Assembly (NCBI GenBank): GCA_964247055.1
Contig: OZ176050.1
Coordinates: forward strand, 14,818,001 to 14,882,000
Source of the DNA: Paragordius varius
Lineage: Eukaryota > Animalia > Nematomorpha
Length of the DNA stretch: 64,000 bases
Direction: 5' to 3'
The notes below the pieces were generated by a model. That model saw nothing but the letters and a program-made list of their open reading frames with translations. It was not told the DNA's origin and searched no databases. Below are positions 42,324-59,388 of this stretch, piece after piece (the first letter of the stretch is position 1; each line of letters starts with the position of its first letter). The translations under genes and the position numbers were made by a program.

Positions 42324-45300
42324 ATGGCTGCCGGAACATTAGTTTTTGACGAATTTGGTCGTCCTATGATCTTGCTTAGGAATCAAGAGAGCAAAAAACG
42401 CTTAACTGGTTTAGAGGCTCAAAAAGTATTTATAATATTTGCCTTTTCCCAAAATTATATTGCTTAAAATATTATATATTTTGTAGTCTCATATCTTGGC
42501 TGGAAAGACTTTGGCTAATACGCTTAAAACATCTCTGGGGCCAAAAGGACTTGATAAATTGCTTGTTTCACCGGATGGTGAGATTACCATAACTAATGAT
42601 GGAGCAACCATTCTAAAGAATATGGACGTTGAACATCAAATAGCAAAATTGATGGTTCAACTTTCTCAGAGTCAAGACGATGAAATTGGAGATGGTACCA
42701 CGAGTGTTGTGGGTAGAAATTGCCATATAATAATCATTTAAACAACATTAAAGCGTTAGTTGATTTTCTGACATGGCAGGTTTTAAAATTTAAGACAATA
42801 AAATTGCAATATTTCCCTCTTTGTCACCTATTCTTATCCAAATTGAGGACTGTAGGATGTATTGAGGCCGTATATGGCCGGTTTTAAGCTTGTAAATTGC
42901 TTAAATATACTATTTTACACATGAGTTTTTTTAATATATTGCCAAATTTTTTTTATCATACCACTTTACCCATTCTTATGCTAAGTTGTTTAAACAACAA
43001 ACGACTTATTCGAATAGCAATTTTTAGTTAAAAATAAAATTATTTAAGACAAAAATTTTTCGTTGAGATGAGACCGCCGACACATTTTTGAATCTTAAAT
43101 TTTTCTCTTTTAATTTAAATGATTACAAATGGGATATGTATAATTGTTGTTTCCTAATTACATTCTCAACCGTTATTTAGTAATCCAAACCGAAGATTGA
43201 GACAATCACGGTCAAAGATTATAAAATTGTTTGTTTGAAACAAAATTTGTGTTTAGTATTTAGCCTTTTGTCTTTATAATTTGATTGATTTTTTATCTTA
43301 GTGTTGGCTGGAGCGCTGTTGGAAAAGGCAGAAGCCTTACTTGATTCAGGAATTCACCCAATCCGCATTGCTGATGGTTTCGAATTAGCAGCAAAAACTG
43401 CCGTCCAGCATTTAGAAACGATTGCCGAGAAATTTACGGTGGATCCCAAAAACCTTGAACCGCTAATTCAAGTTGCCATGACGACGCTTAGTTCTAAAAT
43501 GTTTGTGTCTCGTTTTATTTTTGTTTGATTTTTCGTTGTTTTTTTAATAAAGTAATTAGGGTTAGGATTAGAAATTGATTTAAAGTTTGCAGTAAATTTG
43601 AAATTATAAAACTAAACATGAAAAGTGAATGACATTTTTTTTCAATTTGGTAATCCTATTGTTTAATGTTTGGCTAATAAGGAATAGAGATATAAATTCG
43701 GTAACATTATATGTGTAATTTACGATTGTATTTATATAGGTTGTGTAGTGAAATTTAAGGTTATAAAGTAGGTTTTAAGTATTTAAATATTTATAGTATA
43801 GTAAGACAGTCAACCGATGGATAACTTTTGATAATAAAATTAACACCCAATACAACATTAATTAAATTTAAACGTAAAAGTTAAAAGTAATAATAAAGAC
43901 AGGCACAGGCACACTTTAACCCATTAGTTTTTCTATATATAACTCATATAATTACAAGTGTGAAATTTAAAATTAAATTGACATACCAATACTTATTACG
44001 ATTGGTGTGTTATCACTAAAAATCTTTTTTTTAACAATATGATTTAATCTATTTTAAAAAACTAGTCATTTTCTTTTTGTGTGCTTTGTTTTTGCTATTT
44101 CTATTTCTATTGGAGTCAAAAATATGATCTTTGAAAAATAATTTTTAAATTTCAAAAAGCATGGTTTGAAACTCAAATTATTACTACTTTGTGTCTTTAC
44201 AGAATTAATCGCCACCGTCATATGGCTGAAATAGCGGTCAATACAATTCTTGCAGTGGCCGATATGGAGAGACGAGATGTGGACTTTGAATTGATCAAGA
44301 TTGAAACTCGGGTCGGAGGTCGCCTCGAGGAAACGCAACTCATCAAGGGTGTTGTCATTGATAAAGGATTCTCACATCCACAAATGCCAAAAGTTGGTCA
44401 CTTTGTTTTTGCCATAAATGGAATTGCCTTATTTTAATATTGACTATTTTTTTAAAGAGTTTTACAATTAGTATTAATTTATATGTCAAAGTTTGTAAAG
44501 GTATGGTTGGCTGGCTTTTTAAACAATTCATATTCACCCTTAAACAATTCAAATTCCCTTTCAAATAAATTATATGTTTTTTAAGTTTAAAAATTACCAA
44601 TATTTTAATATATATTTTTAAAAAATAAAAATTTTGTTTTAAATTAAAATAATACTCTGAAAAATTAATAATGACATAAAGATATATTTCTCACTAATAA
44701 TGAGTTATATTAGTTTGAAAACACATGATTTATTTTTAGGGTGTGAATTTGAATTGTTCAATGAATTTGAACTGTAAATGGTGTATATATGCGCCACCAC
44801 CAAATATTTTTTGCATATCTCTCTTAGTTTTTACATTTTTGTCATCTTAGGTGGTAGAGAATGCTAAAATTGCCATTTTAACGTGTCCGTTTGAACCGCC
44901 CAAACCCAAAACTAAGCATAAACTTGATGTCGCGTCCCTCGAGGATTACAAGGCACTCCGTGATTATGAATGGCAAGCGTTTGAAAGTATGATTCAACGT
45001 GTTAAGCTGGCTGGAGCAAATATTGCTCTGTGCCAATGGGGTTTCGATGATGAAGCTAATCATCTCTTGCTTCAAAACAATTTGCCAGCTGTGAGATGGG
45101 TCGGTGGGCCTGAGATTGAAGTATTTTACAGATTAGTTTTTTTTAAAATTGTGCTTTTTTGAAAGAATTAAGCGCCTTTTTTCCCTCCTAATTTTAGTGT
45201 TTTTTGCAAACTTTAGTTTAGTGTATTATAAATATTACAGTTTAGAGTCTCTTTTTTCCTTTTTTATTAAAGGGTAAGGACTTAAATTGTATCCGGACAT

Positions 45301-47867
45301 GTGAAGGCTTTAACACTCGCCTGCCCAGGGCTGACAGTGATGATGGAAAAAATGCGTAGTTTCGGGGATCGAACTCAGGCACGCAGTGTGAGAGTCCGGC
45401 GCCCTATCATTTAGTTTAGTGTATTATATGTATTAAAAATGATTATAATATAATTGTCTACAAAGATGGTCCGAAAATTGATATTTTTAACATTTGTTTT
45501 TTACCTAATATGTTACTTACACACACACATATATATATATTGTCTAATTAGTTGGTTGCCATAGCAACCGGGGGCCGGATTGTACCCCGTTTCTCCGAGC
45601 TATCAGCTGAAAAGTTGGGATCAGCTGCGCGAGTGCGTGAATTATCATTCGGAACTGTTGGCGGGCAGGAAGCCGCTCTTTTGGTTGAGGGGTGTCCCAA
45701 CACCCGTGCTGTCACCATACTAGTTCGCGGAGGCAATAAAATGGTAGATTTATTTTTTATAAAAATAAAGTTTTGTAAATACAATCTATCCTTTATTTTA
45801 TCAAAAATTTATTTTTTATCGTTAAATGGGTCCAAATATTTGGTAAAGAATGGAAAAAACAAGAGCTCTATGGTAATTCTTATACTTTTTTTAATGAATA
45901 TGATATTGCTAATAGGAGCTGTTTTTTCAATTCTTTAACAGATATTTATCCCACTTAACGAAAAATTTTTTTTTGATAAAATAAAGTTTTTAATTAATTA
46001 TTTGTAATATATGAGAAAAGTTAAAGCTAATTTTTTAATATAAACACGCAATTTTAAGAGTTAGTTCTTTTTTATTTTCTAAACCATTTTTTGGATTCTC
46101 AATATTATTAATATATAGATGTATATGCTTAATGCGTGGTAATGAGTATTTTAATAAAAAAAATTAGGAGTGCTTGACCACATATTATTTACATTAATAT
46201 CTAGGGAAATTATTAACGACTATATGAATACGACTATATTTAACATATTGAATTGTTAAGTCTTTTATAAGAATAAAACTCGGATTATTACTTTTTATAT
46301 TTTAGGCCACATATGTGTTCAAATTATACCCTTTTACCGATGATAAGATTTTAGAATTTTCAATTTTCTACTTTTCATTTAGATTGTTGAGGAAGCGAAA
46401 CGGAGTTTGCATGATGCCTTGTGCGTGATTCGCAATTTGATTCGAGACGATCGCATCGTTTATGGTGGAGGGAGTAATGAAATATCTTGTAGTTTAGCAG
46501 TATCTCAGTTTGCTGATAAGGTAAATTTAAACAAAATTATACGGACAAAAACGTGTTAAAATAACAAGGGGCAAATATTTTTTATTTCAAAAGATTGTTG
46601 TACCATTTTAAAATTGATTTAAAATAAAATTATTGTTTTGATTTGCAAATGAGATAAAGAGATCTATATTGGTAACACAATTAGTTCTAATTTCCTTTAC
46701 TATTGTAGTTAAATAATATAGGAAAAATTAAGGTTAAAAAGTGTAATATTGACTTTTGCAAAAAAATTATTTGTCTTTATGTTTTAAAACTTTTTGTCCG
46801 TATTAATTTTAATTTTTACTGTAAATTTTAGTTTACAATATATGTGGGCCATGTTATGTTTAATGGCGTTTTTCGATATGGCCCTCTGCAAATAAATAAT
46901 TTGTTGAAAATACTAATTTTTTATATGTTTTTTGTTGAAAATATACTAACTAAATTACCTTTTAATTGAGCTATGAAATTTTGATAAAACTCATCATAAA
47001 AATTTAATAATTTTCTCTCTAAGTTAGTATAAACACTACAAAATCATACACCATATAAATTAAATTATTATAATTTTCTCTTTTATATCATATATTGCAT
47101 ATATACCAGGCTCTTTTTTAAAATTTTTATGAATGATAGAGAATTAATTAATCCAAAATATGTTATACATTTTGTCCAGATATCAAGTATTGAACAATAT
47201 GCAGTTCGAGCATTTGCAGAAGCCTTAGAGGCCATCCCTACAGCCCTGGCTGAGAATGCGGGGATGAATGCTCTTCAAATGGTTTCTTCGCTCAAGGGAC
47301 TTCAACTTGAACGCTCTAACCCAAGGCTGGGTGTAGATTGTTTCGGAAATGAAAATTATGGTTTTAAAATGATTCATTTATTTCCAATAAAGTTTTTATC
47401 GTTTAAATGTATGCATATTGATCGAGATTGATTCTATTAGAACTAAATTAACTTGTTTTTGAATCTTAATTAAACACAACAGTTTTCGTAACTGTGCAAT
47501 AAGCTGTCCTAAAAATGTGTTTTTATCGTTTTTTGATGCATTATCCTATTTATAGTTTTTTGTTTTACTTGAACTTTCTATTCATAATAGTATAAATAAA
47601 AAAACTTTTAATTTTTTTAATTTATACTGTCAGATTATAATAATTGGGCAAATGAATTGGTTAACAGCGTTATATTCTGTTTTTTTGCAATAGTAAAGGT
47701 TTAAAAATACTAAATTTTATAAACTATCTATATACTTTACAGACATGAAAAAACAACATGTTATTGAAACCTTAAGTGGAAAAAGACAACAAATTTTGTT
47801 GGCCACTCAAATGGTGAAAATGATCTTGAAAATTGATGATATCAGGTCAAAAGCTTCGCCTTATTAA
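42324..47867 (+). CDS. CCT5: T-complex protein 1 subunit epsilon (CCT/TRiC chaperonin subunit 5), 540 aa, 9 exons
   Basis: Exons: 42324-42425, 42487-42712, 43302-43500, 44203-44392, 44851-45120, 45552-45743, 46383-46520, 47180-47360, 47743-47867; 1,623 nt with consistent phases. Diagnostic sequences: [121 protein letters not shown]. Confidence 0.97.
44521..44785. mobile_element. Foldback-like element family F-A, degenerate copy in CCT5 intron 4
   Basis: AACAATTCATATTCACCCTTAAACAATTCAAATTCCC at the left and TTTTAGGGTGTGAATTTGAATTGTTCAATGAATTTGAACTGTAAATGG at the right. The spacer matches the 51902 and 54713 copies in opposite orientation. Confidence 0.7.
45231..45409 (-). mobile_element. 5'-truncated tRNA-Glu(CTC)-derived SINE with 19-bp TSD in CCT5 intron 5
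   Basis: The minus strand reads TGATAGGGCGCCGGACTCTCACACTGCGTGCCTGAGTTCGATCCCCG, containing an anticodon-loop-like CTCTCAC and a B-box GTTCGATCCC, and ends in an A-rich tail. It is flanked by the perfect direct repeat TTTAGTTTAGTGTATTATA at 45212-45230 and 45410-45428. Confidence 0.7.
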
Positions 47868-48829
47868 AGCAACATTCAAGAAACACTTTTTGTGCAAATC
47901 TCGATAATTTTATTTTTTTCTTCTGTCTTTTGTACATGCTGTTTTTTTGTAATTTGCTAGAAATTTTCGTTAATTTTTTTGAATGTAAAATAGGGTAATA
48001 AATGTTGGAGTTTATTTTTGTGATTATTTTTTTTCTTCTAAAAGGTAATTTAATTGCACATTACTATATTCATTAGATCAAGGAGTTATCATTAATATTC
48101 ATAAGATGTAAATTTTATTTTTAATTGTTTTTTCCTCCTAAAGTTGGTCTACTTTTATTATTGTTGACTGTAGGGGGTGTATACATGAATAAAGTTGATC
48201 ATATAAGATTATAAACTTAATAACAAAATGAATTATAACAACCCCCGCTCGTTATGGTATATAGTAAAAATGGAAATTATACGGACAAAACGTAAAAATA
48301 TAAAGACAAATTTTTTTTCAACAGATAACCATACTTTCTCAAACCTTAATTTGTCCAATTAAAATGATTAAGTAACAATCATAAAGCATTCAATTAATTA
48401 TGTTACCAATATACCCCACTATTTTATACTTTGTAGTTTTTATATGTGGGTACACCTGTTTAGATCGTTATGTAACGCCTTATTGTGTTAAAAGCTTATC
48501 AAGACCAAGGTTTTAACCACAACTATTTCGTTGCAGAATACTATTTTTAGTTTGTATGGCTGGATATTGGGTTAATAATAGTTGCATAAAAAAATCGTTT
48601 ATTAATTCGTAATTGGTAAATTTGAATTAATAATTATATAAATGATTGGTAAAGGCCTATATAGCAATATTTGAAGCTACTGTTAATATTACCAACTCGT
48701 AAAACAGTAATATTGAAATTAACGGACATAACATAAAATATTAGATAATCATACTTAACATCATTCGAAGTATAGTCATAAATTTTTTCCATCTTTTTCT
48801 TAAAAAAACATGTAATTTTGAAAAAAATA

Positions 48830-49790
48830 ATACTTATTCAAATACTGAACTTCGCCTCCTACACAGTTCGCTTATCTTTCAGTTAAATGACGTGCCAAAA
48901 AACGATTGTCTCTTCCGGAACCATTGTTATTGTTCAACACCTCCCAAATTATTGAAGGGCTGCTCTGCCAGGGTATGCCCCTTCGAAGTTTTAGTAGTCA
49001 GATGGCGCCAGCTGAGAAGAGGGATGCGGAAAAATATTTTATTGGAGCGATTATAAGGTTACATGGTCTAAATAAATCATTTGATGGCGAAAACGTAGTA
49101 TCACTGGGTTTCAAAAATTTATAACACACTATATCACTCTGTCCCACAAGACACAGAACATGGTATAAGTTTGATGAACTGGCTTAGCAAAGTGAAAACC
49201 ACGACTATACTGTTTTGGATTCACAAAATAATACCATTTCTATCACCCATCCCGATTCATTGCAAAAAGAATTCGTTCAGAAGCAAATTTGACCTTGCGA
49301 TTTAAGATTTGACATCTGTTAAAATTGTATGGGACTCATTTACTAATTATCTGTCCCTTTGCTCGCAGTCTTCTTTATTATTATTATTACATTTCATGTT
49401 TTCACTTTTGAGGGCGGTGATTAAAACAGGTCTGGCCATCTCTATCTATGGCGTCTTCTGCTTCTAGCTGGCAATTTACTATTTTTTTATTGCATCCATC
49501 CATCTCATTTTAGAGAGCCTACGTCTGCTGATTGATTTTGTGATAGATGCAATGCTTTTGTCAATTTAAGTATAACTTGAGTAATCATTAATAATTTTTG
49601 CAGTTTAGCGTCTTTAAAGGTATATCCACATTCTTTCACATCAAATCACATCTTTTAATATTTCGCAACCATATTCACATGTGATAATCGATATGTTTTT
49701 TATTGTTCCCGCCAAAACGATAACTTTCAACAGCCCTATTCTTCTGATGGTAATGCGATTTTTTCATGCATAACATTCGACATGCTTAAA
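48830..49790 (-). pseudogene. Heavily decayed mariner transposase fossil
   Basis: Minus-strand remnants of mariner motifs in shifting frames: MFCVLWD (cf. MLCVWWD), CYKFLKPSDT (cf. YYELLKPGET), PHPSSQLAPSDY* (cf. PHPPYSPDLAPSDY) at ~48995-49030, and QWFRKRQSFF. Many stops; boundaries approximate. Confidence 0.7.
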
Positions 49791-50920: not shown

Positions 50921-53900
50921 ATGAATTACGTATTAAATCAATCCTTTTCAGCGGGTTTGAATAATTCGGTTACACCGAATGTGGGAGCTATCGTTACGGC
51001 CTATTCGGCCGCCAGATACAGTAATCCAGCAACGTATGCCATTCACGAAGTTTACCTGAATAAATCGGAATATGGGAGGGAATATCCCAAAAAATGGTTA
51101 CAGTACCCGCCTCAACCATACTACATGCATAATATTTTTACACTTGTTATTTTTATCATTGGAGCCATTGGGATACCTGAAAACCTTTTTTCACTCTACA
51201 TTTTTGCCACGTAAGTTTTAGTTAACTTAATGAATCATAGCTATGAATTTACTAACACTTAAAAAGTTTTTTAAAAAACGAAATCTTAAAAATTATCTCA
51301 TTATAGGAAATGCAAGTTATCAATAAATGTTCCAAAGTTAAATATTATTTATATGGAAAATATGTGATTGGTCCTAATTATATATGCACAGAGAAAAACA
51401 ATTATGCCAAAATTTACTTTTCTTCTGTAAAAATATTTCTTAAGTTTATATTGATTTTTCATACCGCTATCTAAAAGGTTTGCTTGCACAGAATAAGAAA
51501 GGGAAAAAAATAAGAAATTTAATAGTTTCTTTAATTAAGGTAGGACATTGTAATTACAGCATAATTATACCGCTTAGTGCGCATTTTTCTCCAATAAAAA
51601 TATGATCCAAATACACTATCAAAATATAAAACAATATTATTTATCATTAAAACAATACTATCCTTAAGTTTTGTAAGATTTAGTTGATTTGACAATCTTC
51701 AATCGATCTGACCGAATTGAAAATTTACAGGTATTATGGTTAAAACTCAGTGAAATCTTTATGTTAACATAATAACCATCTAACTTTGGTCTAAACCAAT
51801 AATCACCGAAAATTTCGAAAGACCAAACAAAATAATTTTCGATCCTCAAGAACCGTGCACCATAGAATACCGACAAATATTGTATAGTTGTTAAAAACAT
51901 ATACCATTTACAGTTCAAATTCACCCAAGAACAATTCAAATTCACCCTCAAACAATTCAAATTCACCCTTGAACAATTCAAATTCACTTTTGAACAATTT
52001 AAATTCACCCTAAAAATATATTATGTATATTCGAACTAATATAACTCATTATTAATATAAAATATATGTATATGTTATAGTTTATTATTTTACAGTATTA
52101 TCTTAATTTAAAACAAAATTTTTATTTTTTAAAAATATATAAAAATATTGGTAATTTTTAATCTTAAAAAACATATATTTTATTTGAGGGTGAATTTTAA
52201 TTGTTCGAGGGTGAATTTGAATTGTTCGAGGGTGAATTTGAATTGTTTAAGGGTGAAATTGAATTGTAAATGAGAGATTATACTTATATAACTTTATCTG
52301 AAAAATAAATGAATTAAAAAGCATTTTTAGGGTGGCCCATACGCCCTTAGAGCCGCAGTTTGAATTTTGGTGCAAACTGTAAACTGTTTTGCCCAATTCT
52401 TGAAATTAATTATGTATAATGATATTAGAGAAAAATCATTACAATCTCCGTCCAATTTCATCATAATGAATCTGGCCCTGGCAGATTTGTTGATCTTAAG
52501 CAGTAACTGTCCGCTCAATTTCGTGTCGGGATTGTATGGAAGATGGGTTTTTGGACCTTTAGGTATAAAAAAGTATTTTATCATCAGAAAAACTGTCAAT
52601 GTAAATTAAAAATCTATTTTTAATATTTCCTTTCTAGTATCCCTATTTTATTTATTACTTTATTTTAGGCCAGCGACCGGTCTAATCAGATTGTTCAATA
52701 AAAAAAATTAATTTAACATTTAGTTTATGACTACCCAATTATCTGATAATTTACGAGTCCATCTTTATTTAGTTAATTTAGCCAAATATTTGTTTGGCAA
52801 GCAAGATTTTAAAAATTTCAATAATTATTCACACAAAATTCCATGCTTAATTTTAACTGCACAATTTTGACTTCATCATTCGATTGTCTTTCTCTCGCCT
52901 GTACTATCTATGCTTTATCGCAGTTCAAATATGCAATATATACATGTCTATTTTACACTTTGCCATTTAAAACAATGAGTTATATTAAAAAAATTCATTT
53001 TTTAAAAAGTATGGATGTCTTTTAGAATAAAACATTTGTATTACGTTTCCGTTTAATTTTAATTTTAACACTGTATTATGAGTAGGATGTGATATATATG
53101 GTTTTTCTGGATGCGTTTTTGGTCTTGCATCGATATGTACGATTGCACTGATAGCTTATGACCGGCTTTACAATGTTATGACTTCCTTGTCCATGAAAAA
53201 AATTAGTTATACAACTATTGGACTTTACGTGGCTGGCGTTTGGATTTACTGTACAATCTGGTCGGCAGTTCCCTTTTTTAATATTTCTTCATATGGGTTG
53301 GAAGGATTCCTCACCACATGTACTATTGATTACACTGATCAGGTTTATTTTTTCGGTTACATTAATTTAAATGAGAAAAAATGGAATTTTTAACATTACA
53401 GCAGTAGGGAATCAGGAATCCATTAAATTTAATGATTTTTTTTCACGCGCTTGTATTTCAATGATACTTTGCTGACCGCTAGGTTAATGAAAAATTTTGT
53501 TCGATAAAATTTAATCACATAATACTATAGTGTTCGAAATCTCTAGGGTAATTATTTTATTTAATTAAAATGTTGCAACTAAGTTTTTTTTCAATCTATA
53601 TGATAATAGTTATTTTTATACAATGATATTTAAGAAGTAACTATTTTTTAAGTTAAAAACCATTGATGGTATATCTGCAAAGTTTGATTTAATTTTAAAC
53701 TAATATAAAATAAACTATAAATTTTACGATATAGACGGAAATGGCAAGACTCTACAATCTCCTGTTGTTTATATTCTGTTTTATGATTCCATTGTTAATT
53801 ATTGCTGGAACATACTTTAAGATTTTCCGCATCCTGGCTGAACATCAAAGGGAAATGGAAAAACAATGCAAGACTATGAAGCAAGCTGAGAGTCGAGTCC

Positions 53901-55823
53901 TCACAAAAAAATTCAATAAATCTGTCAAGATGGCTAAGATAGCCCTTTACCTGTTTTGTGGGTTTTATTTTTACTTTTCTAAATCTATCATATCGTAGGT
54001 GTATTGTAATATTAAGCAATTATCCGAACTCAAAACATACACCGCAAAAAAATCATTAATTTTCTTAACATGCTTTGAGGATTATTCAGTATAAAAAGTA
54101 AATTATAGATGCTAAAATGCAGAAAAGAGAAATTAAAATCCTCAAAGCCTCAGATTACCTATTTATGACAATAGTGGGTTATTCTAAGCCGTTTAAAATT
54201 GTGCAATATATAATGTTTTATACAGAGATTAACTTAGCACGGGTGACCATATGATCTAATCAAAAAGCATGACAAAAGCATATAGTTGAAATTTTATTTC
54301 GGGCTAATATAATCACACCCTTGAGAAATAAATTTCCATTATAAGTCTGTAGAAAGTGTATGGCTTAGGATCAAAGGGACACTCCAAACCATTGAGATGA
54401 ATAATATAATATAACGAAAAAGAGGGCGTTTGCTGTTTGCCCATCATAGTTTATTAAAACAGTAAAGTAAAAACTAAAGACAAATAAATTATTAAAGGAC
54501 AACCATATTTTTTAAACTTTGTTTTTTTGATAAATCTCACTGTTTTGTGTAAATAAAAAATAGAGAATTGGTAACTAAACATCCATTTATATATTACAAA
54601 ATTGTAATTATTTTTAGTTTATGTATAAAAGATTAAGGTTCAAAAAAGTGTTGCCTTTAAAATATTTGTATTATAGTTTTACATTTTGTGTGTATAAATC
54701 CAATTTTAAATATACCATTCACAGTTCTAATTCACCCTTGAACAATTCAAATTCCCCCTTGAACAATATAAATTCACCTTCGAACAATTCAAATTCACCT
54801 TTGAACAATTCGAATTCACCCTAAAAATAAATTATGTGTTTTCGAACTAATATAACTCATTATTAATGAGAAATATATCTTTATGTCATATTTTATTATT
54901 TTTTCAATATTATTTCAATTTAAAACAAATTTTTTTAAAAAAATATACAAAAATATTAGGTAATTTTTAATCTAAAAACATGTATTTTATTTGAGGGTGA
55001 ATTTGAATTGTTTAAGGGTGAATTTGAATTGTTTAAGGGTGAATTTGAATTGTAAATGGTATATTTTAAATTTAGAAACTAGAGATGTTTTATATAATTT
55101 TATTTATAGGTATATAGTTGCCTGGGGACCCTATTCCTTTGTTTGGTTTTTGTGTGCCGTTGGTTATTGTGATTATGTGACACCCTTCATGTCAATGTTA
55201 CCAGCTATCTTTGCCAAAACAGCGGGTCTTTACAATCCCCTCATCTATATGGCTTCTCATGATAAGTTTAAAGATGTAAAATTATTTGATTTAAATTGAA
55301 ATAGGAGTTTTGCTTATTTGATAGTTTCAAGGTTTAGACTAGGCTTATTTTTGGGGCAAAATATAAGGGGAAATGGGTTGGAAATGAACCGTGCTCTGCT
55401 CCTTAACACTAAAAACAAATTTTACCCGTAAAGGCCAAAAAATCAATACACTACTTATTACATGCATTTTTAGCTTTGTGCTTGCATAGGTCCTTAAAAA
55501 GAAGTACCGTATTTTCCGTGTCATAATGGAACGCGTGAAAGAGGAAGAAAAAGCTCAGAAAGAAGCTCAAAAATCCGAGGTTTCCATGGCAACCACAGAA
55601 GTTTCAAGCGCTGAATTTGGTGGAACAACTTCAGTGGGTCCTTCTACGGCCCAACCCTTGGGGCCTGGGGATGGTAAAAAATTGAATGAAGCCACAAACG
55701 CTACAACGGATAAAAGTAATTTTTTGGGGGATTTTTTTCGTATAATAATGTACCCTCCCTTATGAAAACTTTATACTTTTTCATATTGCAGAGAATGGGA
55801 TTGAAAACATAGAAATGAAGTAA
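50921..55823 (+). CDS. Rhabdomeric (Gq-type, melanopsin-related) opsin, ~443 aa, 7 exons
   Basis: Exons: 50921-51210, 52429-52562, 53086-53342, 53735-53961, 55110-55275, 55490-55715, 55792-55823; 1,332 nt with consistent phases. Seven-TM GPCR motifs: SLQSPSNFIIMNLALAD, RWVFGPLGCDIYGF (C110; Y at bovine position 113), AYDRL, YGLEGFLTTCTIDY (E181, C187), AWGPY, PAIFAKTAGLYNPLIY (retinal-binding K296 and NPxxY), HDKFK. S/T-rich C-tail. The last exon assignment is less certain. Confidence 0.92.
51902..52272. mobile_element. Foldback-like element family F-A in opsin intron 1
   Basis: TA|TACCATTTACAGTTCAAATTCACCC plus about five 21-bp subrepeats, a ~200-bp AT-rich spacer, then about four inverted subrepeats ending GAATTGTAAATG. 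Confidence 0.8.
54713..55061. mobile_element. Foldback-like element family F-A in opsin intron 4 (complete copy)
   Basis: TA|TACCATTCACAGTTCTAATTCACCC[21-mer]x~4 … GAGGGTGAATTTGAATTG[21-mer]x~3 TAAATGGTA|TA. The spacer is homologous to the 51902 copy. Confidence 0.85.
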
Positions 55824-58415: not shown

Positions 58416-58697
58416 GATATCATGAAGTGTTTTGATACTATTTGCATCATGCCTCAAATTGATAAGTAGGCCTCCACTTCATTTATAGTTAAAATTATCA
58501 AACATTGCTCCTATGTATTAGATAAAAAGAGCTTATATATATTTTTTGTAACTTCTTGATCAATCAGGGAGAGCTCCAAAACACGGTTGATAAGAACAGC
58601 TGATATTAAAATAAAAAATATCAAATTTTTGATGATAAAATGTGGCCTGAAAGCATTATAAATTTTATTAATATTTTCTAACCATAATATACATTTA

Positions 58698-59388
58698 TAC
58701 CATTTGCACTTCAAGAGTGTCCTTGAACACTTCAAGTTGGTCCTTGAACAATTTAAGTTAGTCCTTAAACAGTTCAAGTTGGTCCTTGAACAATTCAAGT
58801 TGGTTGAACATTTCAAGTTGGTCCTTGAACACTTCAAGGTGGTCCTTAAAATTAATTTTGATTTAACGATAATTTTTGCATTTATTTTTTTATTTTATTA
58901 TTTATTAACCTAATTTTCTTTATTTATTATATATTTATTCATTTAAAAATAAAATTTTATATTTAAAAACCACTTTTATGTTTTAAACTATTTTTTTTCC
59001 AATTTAACAAAATTATTGACTTTTAAATGTATTTTAATTAATAACCCAGAAAACTTATATATTATTTTATTTCGTGTTAAAATCTTAAAAATATCTAAAA
59101 TTATTTTAAGATATCGATAAAGATATACGGTTTCTTAAAAAAGTTGATATCGATTTAAAATTGATGTTAAATAATAGAAAATAGGGTAAAAACAATAAAA
59201 TAGATTAATTATTTACGATTTTATTGATAAAAGTTAAAAACAAAACAAAAAAGTCAAAGGACCAACTTGAACTGTTCAAGGACCAACTTGAACTGCCTAA
59301 GGACCAACTTGAATTGTTCAAGGACCAACTTGAGATGTTCAAGGACCAACTTGAAGTGTTCAAGGACACTCTTGAAGTGCAAATGGTA
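58698..59388. mobile_element. Foldback-like element family F-B (21-bp subrepeat GGACCAACTTGAACTGTTCAA)
   Basis: TA|TACCATTTGCACTTCAAGAGTGTCCTTGAACACTTCAAGTTGGTCCTTGAACA… and …TGTTCAAGGACCAACTTGAAGTGTTCAAGGACACTCTTGAAGTGCAAATGGTA|TA. The outer ~50 bp form a perfect inverted repeat, with 6-7 subrepeats per arm and a ~400-bp AT-rich spacer. Confidence 0.88.

Follow-up and report, generated by a model that had tools for sequence, protein, structure and literature searches.

A seven-exon r-opsin gene of the hairworm Paragordius varius, one of four paralogues with altered DRY and HPK motifs

Rhabdomeric-type opsins (r-opsins) of hairworms were reported by Fleming et al. (2018), who, in the searched portion of the article, describe four of them in the transcriptome of Paragordius varius (project ERP021314). 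They attribute the four to an expansion, confined to this lineage, of the visual r-opsin ancestral to ecdysozoans, and leave open whether the duplications are family-, genus- or species-specific (PMC6283943). The same portion names the ecdysozoan visual r-opsin groups as Rh7/UV/SWS/MWS/LWS and contains no discussion of the DRY or HPK motif (PMC6283943); nor did the literature that we searched yield a discussion of either motif in hairworm opsins. The present work concerns one r-opsin gene of P. varius, located at positions 50921-55823 (+) of the window, by which we mean the whole 64,000-nucleotide stretch analysed (assembly GCA_964247055.1, contig OZ176050.1, positions 14,818,001 to 14,882,000). 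It is an intact, selectively maintained gene of seven exons, in which the DRY motif of transmembrane helix 3 (TM3) is replaced by DRL and the HPK tripeptide at the start of helix 8 by HDK. The genome encodes four such paralogues, the same number as in Fleming et al. 2018, the two sets being likened by count and description, not by sequence. New here are the genomic structure of one hairworm r-opsin gene, the motif observation and the dating of at least this duplication.

The closest described relative is P0001, an unnamed protein product of the horsehair worm Gordionus sp. m RMFG-2023. Homology searches were run on single exons, and an exhaustive profile search with exon 3 returned P0001 as the top relative with an E-value of 8e-31; a further top match, P0007, is the RefSeq entry 'rhodopsin-like [Gordionus]'. 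P0001 is the best match of every conserved exon, at 61-81% identity (81% for exon 2, 69% for exon 3 and 67% for exon 5), which bears out the guess of the original prediction that the DNA came from a hairworm. Over 288 residues P0001 is 65% identical to the window gene, whereas its identity to the three paralogous loci is 49%, 38.5% and 38.6%. Because this identity exceeds that to all three other loci of the same genome, the comparison identifies the window gene as the orthologue of P0001; judged from these sequences, at least this duplication is older than the split from Gordionus. The two proteins share the exon-junction lengths, the DRL motif, a tripeptide of the form H-acidic-K (HEK in P0001), K296, E181, a similar helix 8 and the lack of a palmitoylation Cys, whereas their C-terminal tails are unrelated. 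The annotation of P0001 is truncated at the N-terminus and lacks TM1 and part of TM2, so that the Glu at position 1.49 of the window gene has no counterpart for comparison. The second Gordionus protein, P0007, carries DRA and YQN.

Among solved structures, the closest are squid (Todarodes) rhodopsin (PDB 2Z73 / 4WW3), with E-values of 1.3e-13 for exon 3 and 2.2e-11 for exon 5, followed by jumping-spider kumopsin, with an E-value of 1.5e-11 for exon 3. The segments TM3-TM4-extracellular loop 2, TM5-loop 3-TM6 and TM6-TM7-helix 8 align with squid rhodopsin gapless or nearly so, although the identity over the aligned exons is clearly below that to P0001. Exon 4 is gapless against squid residues 193-258, so that the gene keeps the long stretch from TM5 through loop 3 to TM6 that Gq-coupled r-opsins have; exon 5 is likewise gapless against squid rhodopsin over 55 residues. 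The equivalents of the Schiff-base Lys, E181, C187, C110 and Y113 align in the comparisons with squid rhodopsin and kumopsin. Compared to squid rhodopsin, which has DRY, HPK and a Cys-Cys palmitoylation site, the window gene has DRL, HDK and no such Cys.

The spliced coding sequence is 1332 nt long, corresponding to 443 codons plus TAA, and all exon borders are GT...AG. At the local composition (30% GC) stops should occur once in 12.9 codons, yet 444 codons are open (P ~2.5e-16), which excludes a chance origin of the frame. The GC content of the exons is 37-45%, except for the 32-nt last exon (28%), versus 22-32% for the introns. Exons 2, 3 and 4 individually pass the Pfam 7tm_1 cut-off, and the exons together span profile positions 13-260 in order. 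Exon 1 (50921..51210, +) encodes the start codon, an N-terminal tail with N-x-S sequons and TM1; there are in-frame stops upstream of the ATG, the TM1 is weakly similar to that of the paralogues, and the N-terminal 60 residues are not conserved. Exon 2 (52429..52562, +; 7tm_1 E 1.3e-8) covers loop 1 and TM2 with the D83 equivalent, exon 3 (53086..53342, +) runs from C110 through TM3 and TM4 to C187, and exon 4 (53735..53961, +) contains TM5, cytoplasmic loop 3 and the first half of TM6. Exon 5 (55110..55275, +) completes TM6 with AWGPY and adds TM7 and the start of helix 8, and exon 6 (55490..55715, +) holds the rest of helix 8 and a Ser/Thr-rich C-terminal tail; over its first 24 residues the identity to P0001 is 58%, and beyond them the sequence is not conserved. 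The last exon (55792..55823, +), with 10 codons and TAA, is tentative, as is the exact C-terminus, for it is assigned by GT-AG borders and phase only; without the final splice, the frame would stop at 55765.

For exon 4, a donor at 53952 was rejected, as it leaves TM6 three residues short compared to P0001 and squid rhodopsin. The next in-phase GT, directly after 53961, gives a TM6 that matches both in length, and the tblastn match of P0001 on this exon extends to 53965. Exon 6 contains a second in-phase GT at 55674 (55673-55675), and its use as donor to exon 7 could yield an isoform with a shortened C-terminus.

Inspection of the encoded protein revealed every residue that the original prediction had read from the DNA, and its description of an intact r-type opsin, with the retinal Schiff-base residues and the E181/Y113 arrangement, was confirmed. 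K296 (55216-55218) aligns with the Schiff-base Lys of squid and bovine rhodopsin, and the same column holds a Lys in 104 of 120 relatives. C110 and Y113 lie at 53088-53099, E181 at 53301-53303 and C187 at 53319-53321; the equivalents of E181 and Y113 align with squid E180 and Y111, the bistable arrangement of invertebrates. An Asn occupies site 90 (52505-52507), where exon 2 is gapless against bovine rhodopsin 67-108. Lys at this site marks the ultraviolet (UV) pigments of arthropods. TM1 carries E-N (51179-51184), where most relatives have G-N, and NPLIY is present in TM7 near the tripeptide HDK (55258-55266).

The DRL motif lies at 53160-53168. An insertion of the form DR-x-Y was considered as an alternative, since HMMER opens such a gap against squid rhodopsin, but not against kumopsin; the spacing from R3.50 to W4.50, counted from the alignments, equals that of kumopsin, and the motif is reported as DRL. 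Two marks that are typical but not defining are thus absent, D/E-R-Y in TM3 for class A receptors and HPK/HPR at the start of helix 8 for r-opsins. The substitutions touch Y3.51 and the HPK proline only, leaving D3.49, R3.50 and both the His and the Lys of the tripeptide in place. Of the three positions of DRY, Tyr3.51 tolerates replacement best. A survey of 120 representatives of r-type and related opsins found [DE]RY in 76, with DRY in 57 and ERY in 19, besides DRC in 12 (fish melanopsin-like proteins), DRF in six, DRA in three and DRL in one, the last being the Gordionus orthologue itself. HP[KR] was found in 48 of the surveyed relatives with a residue at that place, and others carry HQK, HQR, HHR, HVK, HTR, HNK, YDK or HEK. 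By this survey, DRL and HDK are uncommon, yet lie within the known range of r-opsins. Accepted r-opsins elsewhere depart from DRY or HPK at the same positions, namely duplicates in scallop with DRF and DRC (PMC10733189) and non-visual r-opsins of tardigrades with HQR (10.64898/2026.04.15.718617). Both lineages keep a canonical DRY/HPK paralogue beside the variants, whereas none was found in the hairworm genome.

Searching the genome with exon 3 revealed four r-opsin loci, all on one contig (C1). Besides the window gene, they are parA at about 2.666 Mb, with ERV at the DRY position and HKQ at the HPK position, parB at about 5.20 Mb, with DRA and HTK, and parC at about 13.19 Mb on the minus strand, with DRL and HGK; no canonical copy of DRY or HPK occurs among the four. 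K296 (FAK...NP..Y) and E181/C187 (LEG...C) are kept in all of them, and the retinal-pocket Trp of TM6, K296, E181 and Y113 are conserved in the four paralogues and in Gordionus. The departure is clade-wide, because all four loci and both Gordionus proteins lack DRY and HPK, and it is specific to the opsins, not compositional, because two unrelated G protein-coupled receptors (GPCRs) of the same genome keep DRY. By these comparisons, the altered motifs go far back in the hairworm opsins and have been conserved across the clade, rather than being a quirk of one gene. In the closest paralogue, parC (L008/L011; C1 about 13,185,660-13,191,170, -), an extra intron splits the counterpart of exon 3 right after DRL. 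Queries of the genome with ciliary opsins (c-opsins) and peropsins found no further opsin; what they returned were two GPCRs that look like peptide receptors. These are apparently intronless class A frames of 518 and 690 codons, at C5:1576917-1578470 (+) and C2:12974376-12976445 (-), respectively, and both combine a canonical DRY with Met at the site of the opsin Lys296 and a long C-terminal tail of low complexity.

In the phylogenetic analyses P0001 served as the stand-in for the window gene. A tree of 101 rows under a mixture model recovered the Gordionus pair P0001/P0007 as monophyletic (support 99) and inside the r-opsin clade (support 100), in a polytomy with panarthropod visual r-opsins, lophotrochozoan r-opsins, melanopsins, arthropsins and rotifer opsins. 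A smaller tree of 47 rows (LG+G4) placed the pair outside all other r-opsins (95/92), which is probably a long-branch effect. Approximately unbiased (AU) tests on the 47-row set rejected none of three groupings: with panarthropod visual opsins, the published placement (p = 0.125), with arthropsins (0.151) and with lophotrochozoan r-opsins (0.174). The hairworm opsins accordingly belong to the r-opsins, a group defined by a place inside that clade, and the trees single out no subclade for them. The original prediction had named a grouping with ordinary arthropod or mollusc visual opsins that already carry DRL/HDK as an outcome that would speak against it, and the trees recovered no such grouping.

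The introns of the gene harbour two copies of an element resembling a miniature inverted-repeat transposable element (MITE). The copy in intron 1 (51896..52279, no strand assigned) has inverted ends of ~100 nt built of 21-nt subrepeats, and the second copy, in intron 4 (54701..55072, no strand assigned), ends 38 nt before the exon 5 acceptor. The two copies are 88% identical over 193 nt, and the element is ~370 bp long. Similar repeat-coded open reading frames (ORFs) at 44355-44600 and 58511-58837 suggest that it recurs in the window, including inside the region of a CCT5-like gene. This gene, a multi-exon TCP-1/CCT-type chaperonin gene (CCT5) at 42496-49124 (+), lies directly upstream of the opsin on the same strand and was recognised by ORF translations only.

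Components of a Gq cascade were looked for in the same genome. A Gq/11-class G-alpha gene lies at C10:1.465 Mb, with an E-value of 1e-25 to solved Gq/G11 versus 1e-17 to Gt, Go and Gi; Gs-class and other G-alpha genes are also encoded, and one G-alpha exon had no match among solved structures at the strict threshold. Three loci with a TRP_2 domain represent channels of the TRPC type.

Altogether, we consider it probable that this gordiid horsehair worm has here a functional gene for an r-type opsin, orthologous to the Gordionus gene and one of four old paralogues, with Gq-type signalling likely retained. We propose that the protein binds 11-cis-retinal via K296 to give a bistable pigment, which would absorb visible rather than UV light owing to the Asn instead of Lys at site 90. 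Once photoisomerised, the opsin would most likely still activate the genome-encoded Gq-class G protein, from which the signal could pass through phospholipase C to TRPC-type channels. The site of action may be light-sensing cells of a simple microvillar or dermal type, outside any eye, in the larva or the free-living adult. As for DRL, H(D/E)K and perhaps E1.49, their probable effect is to adjust how stable the resting state is or how efficiently the receptor couples; signalling as such probably persists.

Several observations weigh against this proposal. The Glu before N1.50 occurs in none of 80 aligned relatives, 57 of which have Gly. The published hallmark of Gq coupling in opsins, HPK (PMC10733189), is missing in all four hairworm paralogues. 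A genome search for the C-terminal domain of phospholipase C-beta was uninformative, its control having found nothing. No match to a carotenoid oxygenase (PF03055, RPE65/NinaB/BCO) was found in the genome at E <= 0.001, although the same exon-by-exon method did recover the split G-alpha genes. The conversion of carotenoids to retinal may be beyond the worm, which, should the enzyme truly be lacking, would depend on its host for the chromophore. Of five putative RNA runs carrying the label of this species, four were compared with the locus, and none of these has a contig that covers it; the protein collection holds no protein of 218-695 or 47-149 residues from it, neither of which is proof of silence. 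Moreover, pigment formation, spectrum and the choice of G protein are matters that we infer. As a separate observation, runs labelled with four other organisms (X5-X8) contain 7-34% of the locus's sampled words, which would fit hairworm DNA in host samples, or close relatives.

A working photopigment whose coupling has moved off Gq, whether to Go, Gi or Gs or to a weak or arrestin-biased output, through the clade-wide loss of Tyr3.51 and the HPK proline, is in our view unlikely. It draws on the absence of DRY/HPK from all four paralogues and on DRL/HEK in the orthologue, which make the change fixed and old, on the citation of HPK as a Gq-coupling hallmark (PMC10733189) and on the Gs-class and other G-alpha genes of the genome. 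Nevertheless, the gene retains D3.49, R3.50 and both the His and the Lys of the tripeptide, loop 3 has the length of that of squid rhodopsin and is similar to it, the r-opsins still include melanopsin-like proteins of fish that carry DRC and tardigrade members that carry HQR (10.64898/2026.04.15.718617), and there is no validated rule that leads from such substitutions to a G protein. The motif changes are weak evidence of changed signalling. The possibly changed signalling of the original prediction was overstated in this respect: the substitutions are real, but D3.49 and R3.50 are kept and accepted r-opsins carry DRC, DRF, DRA, HQR, HQK and HVK. Light-independent sensing roles have been reported for some insect opsins, and the hairworm opsin might likewise be kept in an eyeless parasite for a sensory or structural role in temperature, touch or chemical sensing, which we regard as rather improbable. 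The missing carotenoid oxygenase and the divergence of the motifs that face the G protein would suit such a role, and to our knowledge no eyes have been described in adult hairworms; on the other hand, K296, E181, Y113 and the TM6 Trp are conserved in the four paralogues and Gordionus, as selection for chromophore binding predicts, and an insect host could supply retinoids. A broader conjecture joins these two lines: a hairworm r-opsin clade, of four paralogues and at least two genera, that has lost both Gq hallmarks, in an animal in which neither a carotenoid oxygenase nor another opsin class was detected, may signal via another partner, or its members may be retinoid-scavenging or light-independent sensors tied to the passage of the parasite out of its host into water, a prospect that we hold to be quite doubtful.

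That the copy is unexpressed or decaying is very unlikely. The missing contig in the four putative RNA runs, the TM1 Glu unique in the sample and the MITE-like insertions in introns 1 and 4, the latter 38 nt from the acceptor of exon 5, might suggest decay, but the seven exons hold 444 open codons where stops are expected every 13, all splice sites are canonical, and the protein retains every key residue and 65% identity to an orthologue of another genus. Transfer of genes from host to hairworm has been proposed for another hairworm genus, and a horizontal origin from an arthropod host might be envisaged by that precedent; it is effectively refuted here, as the trees do not unite the gene with arthropod opsins, its introns, composition and four-member family are in common with the rest of the genome, and it possesses an orthologue in Gordionus.

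In itself, this is an ordinary opsin gene of a phylum in which opsins have already been reported. The original prediction had raised an under-described photoreception system, which is right in part, but four P. varius r-opsins are on record (PMC6283943) and a Gordionus paralogue is already labelled 'rhodopsin-like'. The conserved loss of Tyr3.51 and of the HPK proline, together with the undetected carotenoid oxygenase, merits a functional test, and is not itself proof of altered signalling. The hairworm clade, in which DRY and HPK are replaced throughout and no canonical copy is left, offers a natural test of how important these motifs are for Gq coupling. Hairworms must time their exit from the insect into water, and the maintained set of four opsins indicates that these animals, with no described eyes, sense light somehow.

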